NCBI GenBank assembly: GCA_964188305.1
Contig: OZ076885.1
Length of the DNA: 64,000 nucleotides
Origin: Podarcis bocagei
Lineage: Eukaryota
Reading direction: 5' to 3' (one strand)
The first letter of the stretch is position 1. Each line of letters begins with the position of its first letter. The translations under genes were made by a program, and so were the position numbers. This document shows positions 21,164 through 61,075 of this stretch, one piece after another. Under the pieces are notes generated by a model that was not told the DNA's origin, did no database searches, and worked only from the letters and a program-made list of their open reading frames with translations.

Positions 21164-21335
21164 TGGGCAGTGGCTCAGTGGTAGAGCACCTGCTTTGCAT
21201 GCAGGAAGGTTCCAGGTTCAATCCCTGGCATTTCTATGGAGGGCTGGCAGCCCAGAAAGTCACTGCCAGCCAGCGCAGACAGTGCTGAGCTAGATGGAGC
21301 AATGGTCTGATTCAATACAAAGCAGCCTTCTATAA
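21164..21335 (+). mobile_element. Squam3-type tRNA-derived SINE
   Basis: A box GGCTCAGTGGTAGAGC and B box GGTTCAATCCC, followed by a non-tRNA body ending GCAGCCTTCTA. Confidence 0.85.
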
Positions 21336-38034: not shown

Positions 38035-38165
38035 TCAAGTGTGGGGATTCTTTGGGCCTCTGGATGTTGCTGAACTACAACTCCCATCAGCCCTAACAAG
38101 CATGGCTGAGGATGATGGGAGTTGTAGTTCAGCAAAATCTAGAGGACCAAAGGATCCCTAACCCG
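38035..38165. mobile_element. Palindromic hAT MITE (older copy of the 47351 family)
   Basis: ACTACAACTCCCATCA / TGATGGGAGTTGTAGT inverted arms. Further degraded copies at ~13760-13885 and ~21700-21800. Confidence 0.75.
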
Positions 38166-41680: not shown

Positions 41681-42285
41681 TATTATTTATACCCCGCCCA
41701 TATGGCTGGGTTTCCCCAGCCACTCTGGGCAGCTCCCAACAGATTAAAAACAGAATAAAACATCAAACATTAAAAACTTCCCTAAACAGGGTTGCCTTCA
41801 GATGTCTTCTAAAAGTCAGGTAGTTGTTTATTTCCTTGACATATGGTGGGAGGGCGTTCCACAGGGCAGGCATCACCACTGAGAAGGCTCTCCGCCTGGT
41901 TCCCTTTTACCTCCCATCTCGCAGTGAGGGATCCGCCCGAAGGCCCTCGAAGCTGGACCTCAGTGTCTGGGCAGAACAATGGGGGTGGAGATGCTCCTTC
42001 AGGTATAGTGGGCCGAGGCCATTAAGGGCTTTAAAGGTCATCACCAACACTCTGAATTATGCTCAGAAACGTACTGGGAGCCAGTGTAGGTCTTTCAGGA
42101 CCAGTTTTATGTGTTCTCAGCGGCCACACCAAATCACCAGTCTAGCTGCCACATTCTGGATTAGTTGTAGTTTCTGGGTCACCTTCAAAGGTAGCCCCAC
42201 ATAGAGCACACTGCAGTAGTCCAAGTGGGAGATTACTAGAGCATGCACCACTCTGGCGAGGCAGTCTGTGGGCAGGCAGGGTCTT
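41681..42285 (-). mobile_element. L2 LINE 3' fragment (young family)
   Basis: Reverse strand encodes YVGLPLKVTQKLQLIQNVAARLV-type and RAFSV-type L2 motifs, followed by the tail. Confidence 0.88.
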
Positions 42286-43310
42286 ATTTGTATCACAGAA
42301 ACTGTAAGTTAAAGAACTTGGTGCCTGAGCTTGTTTTTCTCCTCCTCCCTCCTCGTTTCTTTCTTATCGCATGCCATGCCTTTTAGATTATAAGCTTGAG
42401 GGCAGGTACTGCCTTACTACAATTTTTTTGTATGCTTCTCTGGCAGCCTTTGGGGCTGCAGAGCAGGTATAAATGCTTTAAAATTAGCTGCCACAGCATT
42501 TAAAACAATCTAAAGAAAATAGCATTAAAATTCATCATTCATTTTAGCATTAAAATTGCATATTCCTTGTATCTCAGACACTGCCTGTTTCCTGAGACTC
42601 GGTAATTTTTCATCTGTGTGTTGGTTGTAAACTCCACTATACCTAGAGGAAAGGTAGATGAACACCCACACAGTGCTCTGATACCACCCTGTATCTCCTT
42701 TTACAACTGATAGCTTGGCTGTTATTCTGAGGCTTGCAGTTGTGATCCGCAGGTTAATGGGGCTTCTCCAGAGTAGGTGCTTTGAGGCATGTAGCCTGGG
42801 GTATGTGTTAGTCTTTGCCTGTACTGCAGCATTCTAAATAAGGAAAGCCTTGCCTCTCTTTCTAATCCACAAAGCAACCTCTAAAATTAGAACTGACCCT
42901 CTTTCTCTTTAGAGGCACATAAAAGAACGCAATAGGCCAAGCATCGCCAAAATAAAAATAAAAACCAACTAGGCAGGGATGGCTGCTGTTGGCACTCAGC
43001 AGTTTCTGACGCAATTGCTTGAGTGGAATACAAGCAGCAGAGTGACATGCGGGGCTGCTTTGCAAAGTGTGGAGGCTGGAGACTTTGCAAGGCTCCCCAG
43101 CAGTCCTTGGATTCATTGGGGAAATAATTTGGCAACCGTTCCCTTTGAAAATGGAATTATTTATCACTGAACGAAACCAGGACTGCAATCCAACAAGCAG
43201 CATTCAAACTCACCTACCTTTCATATCATTACACCAGTCACTTCTGAATGATCTCTTCATTGAGCAGCAACCCAGATTTAGTTGCAGAAAGTTTTCGGGG
43301 AGGTTATACC

Positions 43311-43454
43311 CAGTAGCGTAGCATGGGTTGTCAGCACCCGGGGCAGGGCAAGGCAAGGCCCCCTAAACCATGGATTTGCGCCCCCTAACCCTAACCCCCA
43401 GATGTTGCGCCCGGTGCGGCCGGCCCCCCTTGCACCCCCCACGCTACGCCACTG
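43311..43454. mobile_element. hAT MITE (short form of the 22313 family)
   Basis: TIR CAGTAGCGTAGC / GCTACGCCACTG. TSD GTTATACC. Confidence 0.9.
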
Positions 43455-43462
43455 GTTATACC

Positions 43463-43790
43463 TGAAGGAGCGTCTCCACCCCCATTGTTCAGCCCGGACA
43501 CTGAGGTCCAGCTCCGAGGGCTTTCTGGTGGTTCCCTCACTGCAAGAAGTGAAGCTATGGGAAACCAGGTAGAGGGCCTTCTCGGTGGTGGCTCCTGCCC
43601 TGTAGAATGCCCTCCCATTAGATGTCAAGTAAATAAAAAGCTATCTTCTAAAAAAGACATCTGAAGGCAGCCCTGTTTAGGAAAGTTTGTGATGTTTGAT
43701 TCTATTTTTAATATTCTGTTGTGAGCTGCCCAGAGTAGCTGGGGAAACCCAGCAAGATGGGCGGGGTATAAATAATAAATTATTATTATA
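43463..43790 (+). mobile_element. L2 LINE 3' fragment
   Basis: YLKERLHPHCSARTLRSS...RAFSVVAP, then a 3' tail closely matching the 41681 copy. Confidence 0.88.
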
Positions 43791-47350: not shown

Positions 47351-47486
47351 CAGGCATAGGCAAACTCGGCCCTCCAGATGTTTTGGGACTACAACTCCCA
47401 TCAACCCTGACCACTGGTCCTGTTAGCTAGGGGTGATGGGAGTTGTAGTCCCAAAACATCTGGAGGGCCGAGTTTGCCTATGCCTG
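47351..47486. mobile_element. Near-perfect palindromic hAT MITE
   Basis: Inverted arms of ~53 bp. TSD GGCTAAAT. Confidence 0.95.
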
Positions 47487-57142: not shown

Positions 57143-59553
57143 CATGAATATTTGTAATGTGAATGAGCATTCTTGTCAATGAAAGCTTTACATTTGCATT
57201 GCTTAATGACAGAAGCAAGCGCCGGCATGTGCAAATGTATTTAAGCTGGGTTCACATTACAACTGGAAACCACATTCGAAGCACATTTTCCTTCTGAAAG
57301 AATTCTGGGCACTGTAGTTTGTTAAGAGCTGCTGGGAATTGTAATTCTGTGAGGAGTAAACTACAGGGCCCATAATTATTGGCAGAGGGAATGTGCTTTA
57401 AAGGCTGCAGTCTTAGATTGTGGCAAAGCAACTTTCAGCAAGACCTACAGACTGAGACAGTGCACAGACCTGGTCTTCTTGTGCAGCACATGAGAGCATT
57501 TCTTATGATGTACCCTAGAAGCTTTGCAATGAAAAATACATTCCTTTCTTTGTTATTCATTTTTTCCCAGCTCAATTTTTTTAAAAATCTGAATGGGTAA
57601 TTCCTACTCAACAGTAAATTAACTACATGCCTGGCATTATCAATCAGTGTCAGTGGCTGTATCAGTTACTCAGTTGGATTAGAGCTGGATAAAAGCAACA
57701 CACAGAAGAAAAAAAACATGTGTTGTGGTCTTTTCCCCATGTGAGCTTCCCCTCAGTCCAATAAAGCACATCAACAACCATGTGTGGTGGTTTCTCCAGC
57801 TGGTTCTGATAGCTGAGGGAGAAGAACCTACCTCAAAACAAGGCCTGGTTTCAGGCTTGTAAAGTAGCCACATGGGTTCTCCAACTGTTGCCCAAAGAAC
57901 ATTGAAACCCGCACAGATATAATCACCTCGCCAAGCAGCCTCGATACTTCTGTCAAAAACATTCCTGAAACTTCCAGTGATCCATTTGGGGCCTTGTCAC
58001 CTATGAGATGCAACTTTAAGGCATTCACAGCATGTGCACCTGTGCAAAGCATTGCTTCCAGTGACTTTTTAAACATGGAATGACTTCTCAGCAGTAGTAA
58101 TCAGCCTCACATGTCAAAACTGTCTGTCATCTGTTGTTTACTAGATTCAAGTTTCACACCGATAGATAATCTTCAAAGGAAGATTACCCTTCTTTCCTTT
58201 CTATACGTAATAAGCACTGATGAATTGGCCATTCTTTGCCTTTGATCCATCAGGGCCATATTCCATTGTCAGGAGGACTTTGAAGTGGCATTAAGCATAC
58301 ATTAGGAACTGCAGAAAAGATTGCAATGTATATGTTTATTACTGCATATATACACCAGGGAACAGATGGGGAAGGTAATATCCCTTCAATCCCAAACCAG
58401 TGAGATGTCCAGCTGAAAAGGCATCAGTCATTGCTGCTTCAGGATTATTATTTTTTTAAAAAAGAACTGCCTTCTCTTTATTACAAAATACAACATAAGC
58501 TCCAAAGCAATTAAGGGATATGTACTTAAAATTCATTCCAGACTCAACTCGAGTCCATTCGACTCAGTTGCTTGTTTTGGGGAAAAATCATTAGCGTCTA
58601 AAGTTTCAGTAACTTGGGAATGTTCCTTGGTTTTCTAAATGAATGTGTTTACCGCACAAGAGTCCATCATGAACAATTACTACAATTTTATATGAAGTTC
58701 CTATTAAATTGAAAAGCAAGATGTAAGGGTTCAGAATTCTTAATGGAATGAATGGTAATCAACAGTCTCTACGTTTGTCTTGTAATTGGACCTGCCAGAA
58801 AAGCTATCATGTTATTCAAACATTTGGGTGTTTCCCTCCCTCCGACATAATTTGATCCATAAGGATGTCTAGCTCAGTCAGCTTTTTGTACACAAAGGAA
58901 CATTTAATAAATGGGCTAACTGAAGTGGACTGCAATGTGGGTTAGAGTCAGAATTACACATATTACGGCAATGTGCAGTTTCAGCACCTAGAATTACCAA
59001 TAGGTGGCAGAAAGTCAAAAAAATGCAAAAATCCCAGATTTTAATAATGATCAAATATACAAGAATCCCCCTCTGTATCCCTTCCACATCTGCACAGAAT
59101 TAGAAGGTAAGGGGAAAATATTTGTCAAACAGAGGGATTACTTACTAGGATTTACCATATTTTTTAATAATTTCAGCAACTTCCCAGGAGCGTGTGAAAA
59201 ACCCAGTAGTGCAAATCAACTGATCCTTGTTAGATTTCCCTCGCCTGACAGCCACCTACAAATATATATGAGATTAAGCATTTCCAAATCCTTATTGTTA
59301 TCCTTTCCCTTGCTGTTCAAAGATAACACGATTTCCCACGGATTTAGTCACCTTTATCCTTCTTTAAACTTGGACAAAGCTATAAATTGAAAGCAATTAG
59401 CTGCACAGGGCTGCTTTTGATTCAAAATGGGATGATCAGATAACCAACACATTTTCTGAAGCAGTTGCTAAAGCCTGAGAGCAGAGCATGATAGAAACTG
59501 TTCCACTGTGAAGTGGTTCAAACTGAGTCCATCCAAAGTTATGTATACTAGAG

Positions 59554-60273
59554 CAGTGTTTCCCAACCGGTGTTCCGCGGCACACAAGTGTGCCGTGAGA
59601 CGTTGGCTGGTGTGCCGTGGGAGGGAGGCGGGCGAGTCGGGCGGTGAGAGGCGGCGGCGGCGAGGATCCGCGTCGAGCCAGGGGCGGCTCCGCGGTGGTG
59701 GTGCCGAGGTTTCTCTCTCCATTCTCCCCTCACACACACACAGGATCAGCTGACAGGACCCAGCCAATGGGGCGGCGGCGGGGCAGCGCGTGCAAAAGGG
59801 AGGAGCGCGAGACAGCGGACGAGGAGGAGGCCGGCATGTCCGGGCAGCAGCAGCAACAACAGCAGCAGCAACTCCCGGCGACGGCTCCTCAAGCCCCGGG
59901 CAACCCTACTCCCTCACCGGCCTCGGCCGCCCTCCTGCTCCACCCGCCGCCGCCTCCCCCGCCGCCGCCGGCCACCTCGGCCCCGCCGCCGCCCCCTCCT
60001 CCGCCCGCTATCGCCGCCACCACCACAACAGCCGCCGCCGCCTCAGCTGCCGCCGTCCCTCAGTCCCTCGCTTTGCTGCCTCCTCCCCCCCACCCCCAAA
60101 GCTTGGAGGTTCCCCGGCAAGGGGGAGGGAAAAAAATTGAAAACTTTCACTTTCATGCGTCCCTCCCGGCGTGACGCTGCGCGCTGACGTCACGGGGCTG
60201 TAATGGTGGTGTGCCGCGAGATTTTTTTCATCAAACAAGTGTGCCTTTGCCCAAAAAAGGTTGGGAAACACTG
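59554..60273. mobile_element. Non-autonomous hAT (Buster/Charlie-type) transposon carrying a captured host-gene fragment (Pack-hAT)
   Basis: Perfect 15-bp TIRs CAGTGTTTCCCAACC / GGTTGGGAAACACTG. Perfect TSD TACTAGAG (59546-59553, 60274-60281). GTGTGCCG subterminal repeats at both ends. No transposase. Confidence 0.93.
59836..60060 (+). pseudogene. RANBP9: Transposon-captured 5' fragment resembling RANBP9 (RanBPM) exon 1
   Basis: MSGQQQQQQQQQL...SAALLLHPPPPPPPPPATSAPPPPPPPP matches the recalled RANBP9 N-terminus (MSGQ...QQQQL...AAALLLHPPPPPPPATAAPPPPPPPP). It stops before the SPRY domain, and the frame runs on into element sequence to TGA at 60174. Confidence 0.75.
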
Positions 60274-60504
60274 TACTAGAGTGTGGGCCTCCAATAGGAC
60301 TCCCAAAGGCACACAGGTGCCCACAGAGGCCTTCTCTGGCACATGCAGTGTCTCCTCCCCTTGCTAAAACCAGGTTTGAAATAAGCATTCTATTTTAGCT
60401 AATATAAATAAATAAGCTGTATTATTCCTGATGGCTCTCTCTCTCTCTGTATGTGTGTTACCAATGACAATTTATCCACTTTGCAAATGTGCTGGTTGGT
60501 TACT

Positions 60505-61075
60505 CCCTACATGAGAAAAACGTGGAAAATGTTTACTGCATATTTACAGAAGAATTGTAAAGAGGTTAATACAATAGCAGGGTGTGTTTTTTAACTACTT
60601 ATAATATTAAGGACAATGTTTGGAAATATTTAAAGATATTAAGAAAATTATAGACACATACAGCATATGAAAATATAAAAGAATCGGGAGAGGGAATGGA
60701 GGGAAGTCAAGGGATTGGAGGAATCCCAAAATACAGTGGTACCTCGGGTTAAGTATTTAATTCGTACCGGAGGTCCATTCTTAACCTGAAACTGTTCTTA
60801 ACGTGAAGCACCACTTTAGCTAATGGGGCCTCCCGCTGCTGTCATGCTGCCAGAGCACGATTTCTGTTCTCATCCTGAAGCAAAGTTCTTAACCGAGGTA
60901 CTATTTCTGGGTTAGTGGAGTCTGTAACCTGAAGCGTATTTAACCTGAGGTACCACTGTACGGATTTAATATGGTATGAAAATGTTTTATTTTCTATTTT
61001 TATTGTATTTGTTTATTATGGTATGTGAAGACAATCTCTGATTGTGAAAGATAATAAAAGAATTATAAAAAGAGA
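60505..61075 (+). mobile_element. L1-clade 3' tail interrupted by a MITE
   Basis: HEKTWKMFTAYLQKNC-like ORF2 end, GGGAAGTC 3' UTR motif, AATAAA and A-rich tail. Confidence 0.6.
60734..60958. mobile_element. Tc1/pogo-type MITE (TA TSD)
   Basis: TA|CAGTGGTACCTCGGGTT ... AACCTGAGGTACCACTG|TA. Confidence 0.92.

Follow-up and report, generated by a model that had tools for sequence, protein, structure and literature searches.

What is a piece of DNA resembling the start of the RANBP9 gene doing between the ends of a DNA transposon in a lizard genome? The question is raised by a 720-bp unit at positions 59554 to 60273 of a 64,000-nucleotide (64-kb) stretch of Podarcis bocagei DNA, given on one strand and hereafter called the window (contig OZ076885.1 of assembly GCA_964188305.1). 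Very probably, the unit belongs to the Pack-TIR type (TIR, terminal inverted repeat) of non-autonomous hAT transposons, has RANBP9 5'-end DNA as its cargo, and represents a deletion derivative of an amplified family.

Anatomy of the 720-bp unit

The order across 59546-60281 is TACTAGAG, CAGTGTTTCCCAACC, 690 nt, GGTTGGGAAACACTG, TACTAGAG, with the two copies of the target site duplication (TSD) directly abutting the TIRs (Table 1). The preliminary description of this DNA had reported a 720-bp unit in which both the 15-bp TIRs and the 8-bp TSD are perfect, and all of these were recovered where it had placed them. The 15-mer TIR had two exact occurrences in the whole 64 kb, both being the element ends. 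By our own estimate, a perfect 15-nt inverted pair less than 1 kb apart is expected about 0.06 times per 64 kb, and the adjoining perfect 8-nt direct repeat adds a further chance factor of about 1.5e-5. As had also been claimed, the interior forms a GC- and CpG-rich island amid AT-rich DNA. The whole element has a GC fraction of 0.68 and 71 CpG, with a CpG observed/expected ratio (o/e) of 0.86, and the cargo reaches 0.71 and 0.88, as against about 0.40 and about 0.2 in the 2-kb flanks (GC 0.39-0.41, CpG o/e 0.19-0.22). The TIR, TSD and composition features observed are far beyond chance.

The insertion had been called young. The high CpG content would plausibly reflect either a very recent arrival or an island kept unmethylated. 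We have also noted, 30 nt past the right TSD (60304-60314), the sequence CAAAGGCACAC, whose 11 nt repeat the right-arm motif at 60239-60249 exactly, in inverted orientation. An older related element may have left it behind at this place, or the match may be due to chance.

The carrier backbone and its relatives

The TIR begins with CAGTG and its 15-bp length fits the short TIRs of hAT elements (about 10-25 bp, with a CAG or TAG start). The TSD has TA at positions 4-5 and fits nnnTAnnn, one insertion only being compared here with a consensus over many; this pattern is the signature of Buster/Charlie hAT elements. The motif GTGTGCCG(C/T)G recurs in the left and in the right subterminal arm (repeat families D4, D5 and D8), and the GTGTGCCG repeats are presumed to be transposase-binding motifs.

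We have searched public metagenome contigs for relatives of this backbone. An exact 24-nt scan gave no match, and a gapped-pattern scan combining the TIR with the subterminal motif returned three contigs with hAT-like ends (L003, L004 and L005). These ends start with the identical 15-mer TIR and carry GTGTGCCG subterminal repeats. The left 67 nt of the element aligned to them through GGTGTGCCG(T/C)GG, up to 59620. Past this position the window turns GC-rich, whereas L003 and L005 keep matching each other, and hence we have placed the left cargo boundary at about 59620/59621. The matching stretches (L003:2306-2424, L004:660-770 on the minus strand and L005:978-1100) belong to the Joint Genome Institute (JGI) contigs Ga0081606 and Ga0247629, which are AT-rich and non-lizard.

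A further likeness was found in the insect hAT2_NA MITEs (miniature transposons with inverted repeats), which have the TIR C(A/G)GTGTTTCCCAAC, TSDs of 8 bp and a preference for TA at positions 4-5 (PMC3845634). They occur in Bombyx, Rhodnius, Heliconius and Manduca, and the Manduca form of their TIR equals the first 14 nt of the lizard TIR (PMC3845634). Their hosts are insects and no gene cargo is reported for them (PMC3845634); the sequence comparison covered the TIR, which makes kinship a lead. The hAT status of the metagenomic and insect relatives is based on their 8-bp TSDs and on the classification in the same paper. The 8-bp TSD and the terminal homology to other hAT-like ends led us to assign the carrier to the hAT superfamily, as a non-autonomous member; ORF (open reading frame) translations and Pfam revealed no transposase-like ORF in the element. 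The TIR common to the metagenome contigs and to hAT2_NA raises the possibility of a widespread or horizontally transferred hAT lineage. Pfam assigned no family to the ORFs adjoining the L004 end and gave no support to an impression of Buster-type transposase motifs near it, which we have dropped.

Homology of the cargo to RANBP9 exon 1

The resemblance to human RANBP9 named in the preliminary description proved to be real, though statistically weak alone: in a phmmer search against the PDB, the human protein (7nsc_A) aligned AAAALLLHPPPP..PPPATAAPPPPPPPP to the ORF of the element with an E value of 0.25. A composition-adjusted BLASTP of this ORF against P0004, a squamate RANBP9 product introduced below, was likewise non-significant (E 8). 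Since the protein tests failed on composition, we have relied on nucleotide alignment with shuffle controls.

The reference for this alignment was L002, a Logan contig of a distant squamate found by word-index search, which carries a 153-aa ORF (P0004). This ORF begins MSGQQPQQLPATTP...AALLLHPPPPPPPPPATSAPPPPPPPP, and the exon end is followed by GT. P0004 matched human RANBP9 (PDB 7nsc_A) with an E value of 1e-41, better than RANBP10, and the TIR of the lizard element was absent from L002. On these two grounds we take L002 to be a genuine RANBP9 exon 1 of another squamate.

The segment 59828-60029 aligned to L002:1537-1726 with 78.2% identity over 202 nt (blastn), so that a nucleotide match to a RANBP9 locus does exist (78%), in another squamate. 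Against L002, the cargo scored 112 in local nucleotide alignment, and no shuffle exceeded 33. Between polyQ and polyP lies a stretch of 72 nt with no simple repeat, which aligned without gaps at the orthologous position; this core (59869-59939) had 58/71 identical nucleotides and scored 45, the best of 500 triplet-preserving shuffles reaching 27 (z 13.7). This match of the non-repetitive core ruled out poly-P/Q convergence. In addition, tblastn of P0004 residues 4-70 covered 59857-60057 at 78%. The comparisons indicate that 59828-60045 is homologous to RANBP9 exon 1 and not a product of low-complexity convergence. The earlier proposal of a non-autonomous hAT element with the start of RANBP9 exon 1 as its core was thus upheld by the TIRs and TSD together with the nucleotide homology to L002. 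It had also included the RANBP9 5' untranslated region (UTR) in the capture; here the exon-1 start stood, and the aligned 5' UTR came down to the 8 nt upstream of the ATG.

A HMMER search of 1.84 billion representatives yielded one relevant match (P0001), and the 185-aa ORF, used as query in a third word-index search, brought nothing new. The Logan contig of P0001 (L001:1-1751, run ERR14042001) is near-identical to cargo positions 59821-59995 over its first ~165 nt, differing by a polyP that is 12 nt shorter and by one substitution. It then switches abruptly to unrelated DNA, first CpG-island-like and then AT-rich, and no TIR is present anywhere in it. Such a contig might represent a copy that has been rearranged or a cargo of mosaic origin, or else a chimera of the assembly graph.

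The window is not the RANBP9 locus

In the P. bocagei element, the exon breaks off near codon 70, without a splice donor. We have searched the 64 kb by tblastn for the remainder of the gene, using as queries the exon-1 3' halves and the products of exons 1-3 (P0004, P0124, P0055, P0105, P0047 and P0102). Only noise was obtained for the 3' half of exon 1 and for the SPRY exons; the downstream SPRY exons, whose splicing from this site the preliminary description had named as counting against its proposal, do not occur in the window. With the exon-1 3' half and the SPRY exons missing from the 64 kb, the window is not the RANBP9 locus.

Family members in Podarcis muralis

The search with P0004 retrieved UniProt proteins of Podarcis muralis, which we have collapsed by cluster look-up. 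Fifteen distinct small proteins carry pieces of RANBP9 exon 1 joined to stretches identical to the element, and they fall into four variants. Variant a (P0008, P0124 and P0011) holds the 3' half of exon 1, from ...AASAGPMPAGSGGG... onward. In variant b (the P0013 cluster, eight members), ATTAAATPGDGSSSPGQPYSLTGLGRPPAPP is fused directly to EKELKRRL..., variant c (P0009) has a shorter deletion, and in variant d (P0025, P0132 and P0046) GGE(K/R)RGGGGEDPRR is fused to EKELKRRL.... Read in the +1 frame relative to the RANBP9 ORF, window positions 59853-59945 are 100% identical to the 31 N-terminal residues of variant b (P0131 1-31). At its end (...FVRPSRCDAAR, followed by a stop), P0131 matches window positions 60107-60184 across two reading frames. 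Identity in stretches read out of frame suggests an origin of the window in Podarcis or a very near relative.

The right TIR of the element translates as G-W-E-T-L (GGT TGG GAA ACA CTG). Four P. muralis models end in HYKG-WETL and then continue with differing residues (D, T, L or LYSIYTT). Since these models diverge after WETL, RANBP9 copies in P. muralis abut the common TIR and then different flanks. The 15 proteins and the four different flank read-outs after the TIR suggest, as far as protein models can tell, a multi-copy family that comprises several deletion subfamilies; there are probably tens to hundreds of copies, and not thousands. The HYKG-WETL joint was also considered as proof of splicing into the TIR, and this was rejected because a genomic deletion joined at the common GGT yields the identical protein.

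Several P. muralis models pass the exon-intron boundary, with HYKG followed by a G-rich read-through as in L002. This read-through points to capture from genomic DNA rather than from cDNA. Judged at the protein level, the P. muralis copies differ in ways that CpG transitions would produce (R to H, R to W, R to C, T to M and P to L).

We have noted that the 15 entries (P0008, P0009, P0011, P0013, P0025, P0046 and P0124-P0132; 76-119 aa) are named "uncharacterized" or "RANBP10". They are RANBP9 fragments of a transposon family, that is, an annotation artefact and not independent genes.

Structure of the cargo and the chimeric ORF

The coordinates of all segments are given in Table 1. The first part of the cargo includes a CCAAT box at 59762-59766, and the element as a whole carries this box, GC boxes and the ATG, without a splice donor. 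No significant match was found between 59626-59827 and the upstream region of L002. A short stretch of this part, 59647-59682, matches residues 5-16 of P. muralis P0025 at 10/12 positions, the common stretch being RGGGGEDPRR. The segment 59621-59827 may derive from RANBP9.

The protein encoded by the second part runs in the order polyQ, LPATAP...AALLLH core, polyP and Ala/Thr-rich run. Beyond it, an internal deletion in the window copy removed the exon-1 3' half and the splice donor. The right cargo (60040-60205) gave no significant match to the L002 intron, the 9-mer likeness between them being at chance level.

The ORF starting from the ATG at 59836 reads as the preliminary description had quoted it. 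It matched no Pfam family. At a GC content of 70%, chance is expected to yield long ORFs. The first ~70 codons are RANBP9-derived and the remainder is read-through, with no sign of a functional gene.

Table 1. Segments of the P. bocagei element and its immediate borders (window positions)
Feature	Positions	Strand	Basis
Left TSD copy, 8 bp, TACTAGAG	59546-59553		Direct reading; repeat family D19, 100% identical to 60274-60281
Left TIR, 15 bp, CAGTGTTTCCCAACC	59554-59568	+	Direct reading, repeat listing, exact-match scan
Left subterminal arm with GTGTGCCG repeats; backbone, not cargo	59569-59620	+	Repeat families D4, D5, D8; alignment to L003, L004, L005
Cargo part 1, CpG-island DNA resembling promoter/5' UTR, with GC boxes	59621-59827	+	Composition
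Cargo part 2, RANBP9-derived: 8 nt of 5' UTR, ATG at 59836, ~70 exon-1 codons	59828-60045	+	blastn, alignment to L002
Chimeric ORF, 111 codons	59836-60171	+	ORF list; stop at 60169-60171
GC-rich linker after the internal deletion	60046-60106	+	No L002 exon/intron match; P. muralis copies hold the 3' half
Segment common to other family members: captured intron-1 DNA or right backbone	60107-60187	+	P0131 tail match
Right subterminal arm, GTGTGCC at 60210-60216 and 60239-60245	60206-60258	+	Repeat families D4, D8; direct reading
Right TIR, exact reverse complement of the left TIR, GGTTGGGAAACACTG	60259-60273	-	Direct reading, repeat listing, exact-match scan
Right TSD copy, TACTAGAG	60274-60281		Direct reading, repeat listing

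Alternative explanations

The cargo could have been filled into a hAT element already resident at the locus, by transposition-independent gap filling, in which case the unit would never have moved together with its cargo. Such an origin would fit nearly all animal Pack-TIRs, which are single-copy and compatible with gap filling in place (Tan et al. 2021, PMC8277862). Here, by contrast, the flanks that adjoin one and the same cargo-TIR joint differ within P. muralis, the TSD shows no mismatch, and the deletion-derived cargo has segments in common with other copies. We therefore regard gap filling in place as improbable. Even less credit can be given to the idea that the element is an ordinary MITE encoding polyQ and polyP, whose RANBP9 likeness is a coincidence of low-complexity GC-rich sequence. 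The non-significant protein comparisons with human RANBP9 and P0004 would agree with it, as would the fact that a search of 5.8 billion proteins gave two matches only. Against coincidence, the 72-nt core lies ungapped at the orthologous place in a real exon 1 with the identity and z value given above, MSGQ, polyQ, core, LLLH, polyP, ATSA and polyP follow each other in colinear order, and the sister copies in P. muralis run on into an unmistakable RANBP9 stretch. This reading is already close to refuted.

It is also conceivable that the true RANBP9 promoter and first exon lie here in place, or that the assembly pasted exon-1 reads between repeat ends. The core does resemble a housekeeping CpG-island promoter followed by an ATG, and GC-rich first exons are prone to assembly errors. 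However, the truncated exon without a donor and the lack of any further RANBP9 exon in the window speak against a gene in place, the TIRs and TSD bound the cargo exactly, and the independent P. muralis data show identical cargo-TIR joints, which an artefact would not explain. The chance of either is, in our judgement, close to nil. For the Pack-TIR-type hAT element with an amplified RANBP9 cargo, several points count on the negative side. The protein-level statistics are non-significant after composition correction; the homology to L002 begins 8 nt before the ATG, and nothing aligns upstream of it or past about 60045. The TIR-less exon 1 was seen solely in another squamate. The multi-copy status is drawn from P. 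muralis protein models and not from a second DNA copy, and the TIR-flank junctions are those of the assembly. Finally, no autonomous partner was found in the 64-kb window, where there was neither a further exact TIR nor a hAT domain in the long ORFs.

Proposed history of the family

The preferred explanation, a Pack-TIR-type hAT family with RANBP9 cargo, can be put as a sequence of events. The backbone would consist of the 15-bp TIRs and of subterminal arms of ~50 bp with GTGTGCCG repeats, the slot between them holding the RANBP9 5'-end DNA. In a single capture, an ancestral member would have taken up the CpG island of RANBP9 with all of exon 1 and the first portion of intron 1, probably through template switching while an excision gap was being repaired. 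A hAT transposase acting in trans, through binding of the TIRs and subterminal repeats, would then have mobilised the family many times in lacertids. Internal deletions, produced by abortive gap repair, may have founded subfamilies, each of which was amplified. The window copy is not the primary capture but a derivative of a larger, already amplified family. It would have kept upstream CpG-rich DNA, the ATG and ~70 codons, losing the 3' half of exon 1 together with the donor; its target would have been one TACTAGAG site surrounded by AT-rich DNA poor in CpG. For the capture mechanism, the mobilisation in trans and the abortive gap repair, we infer from established knowledge of hAT and Pack-TIR elements; the recent date of the insertion is likewise inferred.

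Comparison with known systems and significance

Animal Pack-TIRs have been surveyed by Tan et al. (2021), whose survey of 100 animal genomes yielded 370, with hAT elements as carriers of 208 (PMC8277862). Only four were multicopy (three in frog and one in alligator), each with very few copies, and the one lizard genome surveyed, anoCar2, yielded none (PMC8277862). Among them, Pack-hAT-N8_XT of Xenopus tropicalis is likewise a non-autonomous hAT element with an 8-bp TSD and a 5'-end piece of a host gene (the CAPSL 5' UTR), and it has several copies with distinct TSDs in the frog (PMC8277862). The lizard family differs from the surveyed Pack-TIRs in having at least 15 annotated members in P. muralis and several amplified deletion subfamilies, and in a cargo that spans CpG island, ATG and coding sequence. 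An animal Pack-TIR on a hAT carrier is of a known kind, and this one is unusual in its amplification and in holding a complete gene 5' end.

In bats, the Helitron HelibatN3 has brought a stretch of NUBPL (promoter, 5' UTR, first exon, part of intron 1) to a copy number of about a thousand (PMC4224331). Among bat Helitrons, copy number is highest for 5'-end cargos, and these can contribute to host transcripts (PMC4224331). Both systems are vertebrate DNA transposons amplifying a host gene 5' end (PMC4224331), although Helitrons are rolling-circle elements without TIRs or TSD and the lizard carrier is a cut-and-paste hAT. HelibatN3 is the closest functional analogue in vertebrates. The Pack-MULEs of rice and other plants are likewise TIR elements carrying host gene fragments (PMC5861414). 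They differ in belonging to the Mutator superfamily, with a 9-bp TSD, long TIRs, plant hosts and thousands of cargos. Pack-MULEs are biased towards GC-rich 5' gene ends.

Literature searches on Pack-hAT elements, on Podarcis with hAT and RANBP9, and on lacertid DNA transposons turned up no account of the family; their coverage was incomplete, and the result is no proof of novelty. Cut-and-paste gene capture is well documented in plants and sparse in animals, and the element is probably one of the rare vertebrate DNA transposons to have captured a gene 5' end and then spread it. The family would offer a natural system for the origin and spread of Pack elements in a vertebrate. A broader proposal, which we put forward tentatively and consider rather doubtful, is that this lacertid hAT family is a vertebrate counterpart of the Pack-MULEs, recently or currently active, repeatedly taking CpG-island promoters and first exons and spreading them to tens or hundreds of copies. 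If so, full-length members with promoter, ATG and donor would start chimeric transcripts wherever they inserted, and the dispersed promoters and first exons could rewire host transcription. The P. muralis Ensembl models that start in the cargo and end in the flanks would then be the first trace of such chimeric transcripts. Copies of the family also contaminate gene annotation, as with the 15 UniProt entries of P. muralis.

Other features in the window

Downstream of the hAT element by 460 bp, at 60730-60962, lies a 229-bp MITE of Tc1/mariner-like appearance, with 24-nt TIRs (CAGTGGTACCTCGGGTTAAGTA...) and a flanking TA at either end. Two short palindromic elements (47351-47486 and 38044-38158), with arms of 49-58 nt that are 90-98% complementary, have the motif ACTACAACTCCCATCA in common and probably belong to one MITE family. 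The arms of a large inverted repeat at 41681-43777 measure ~330 nt, fall into three blocks of 83-92% complementarity and enclose a core of ~1.45 kb. Finally, 21164-21236 gave an Rfam match to transfer RNA (tRNA) of 47 bits, whereas ARAGORN called none there; this is likely the tRNA-derived head of a short interspersed nuclear element (SINE) or a pseudogene.
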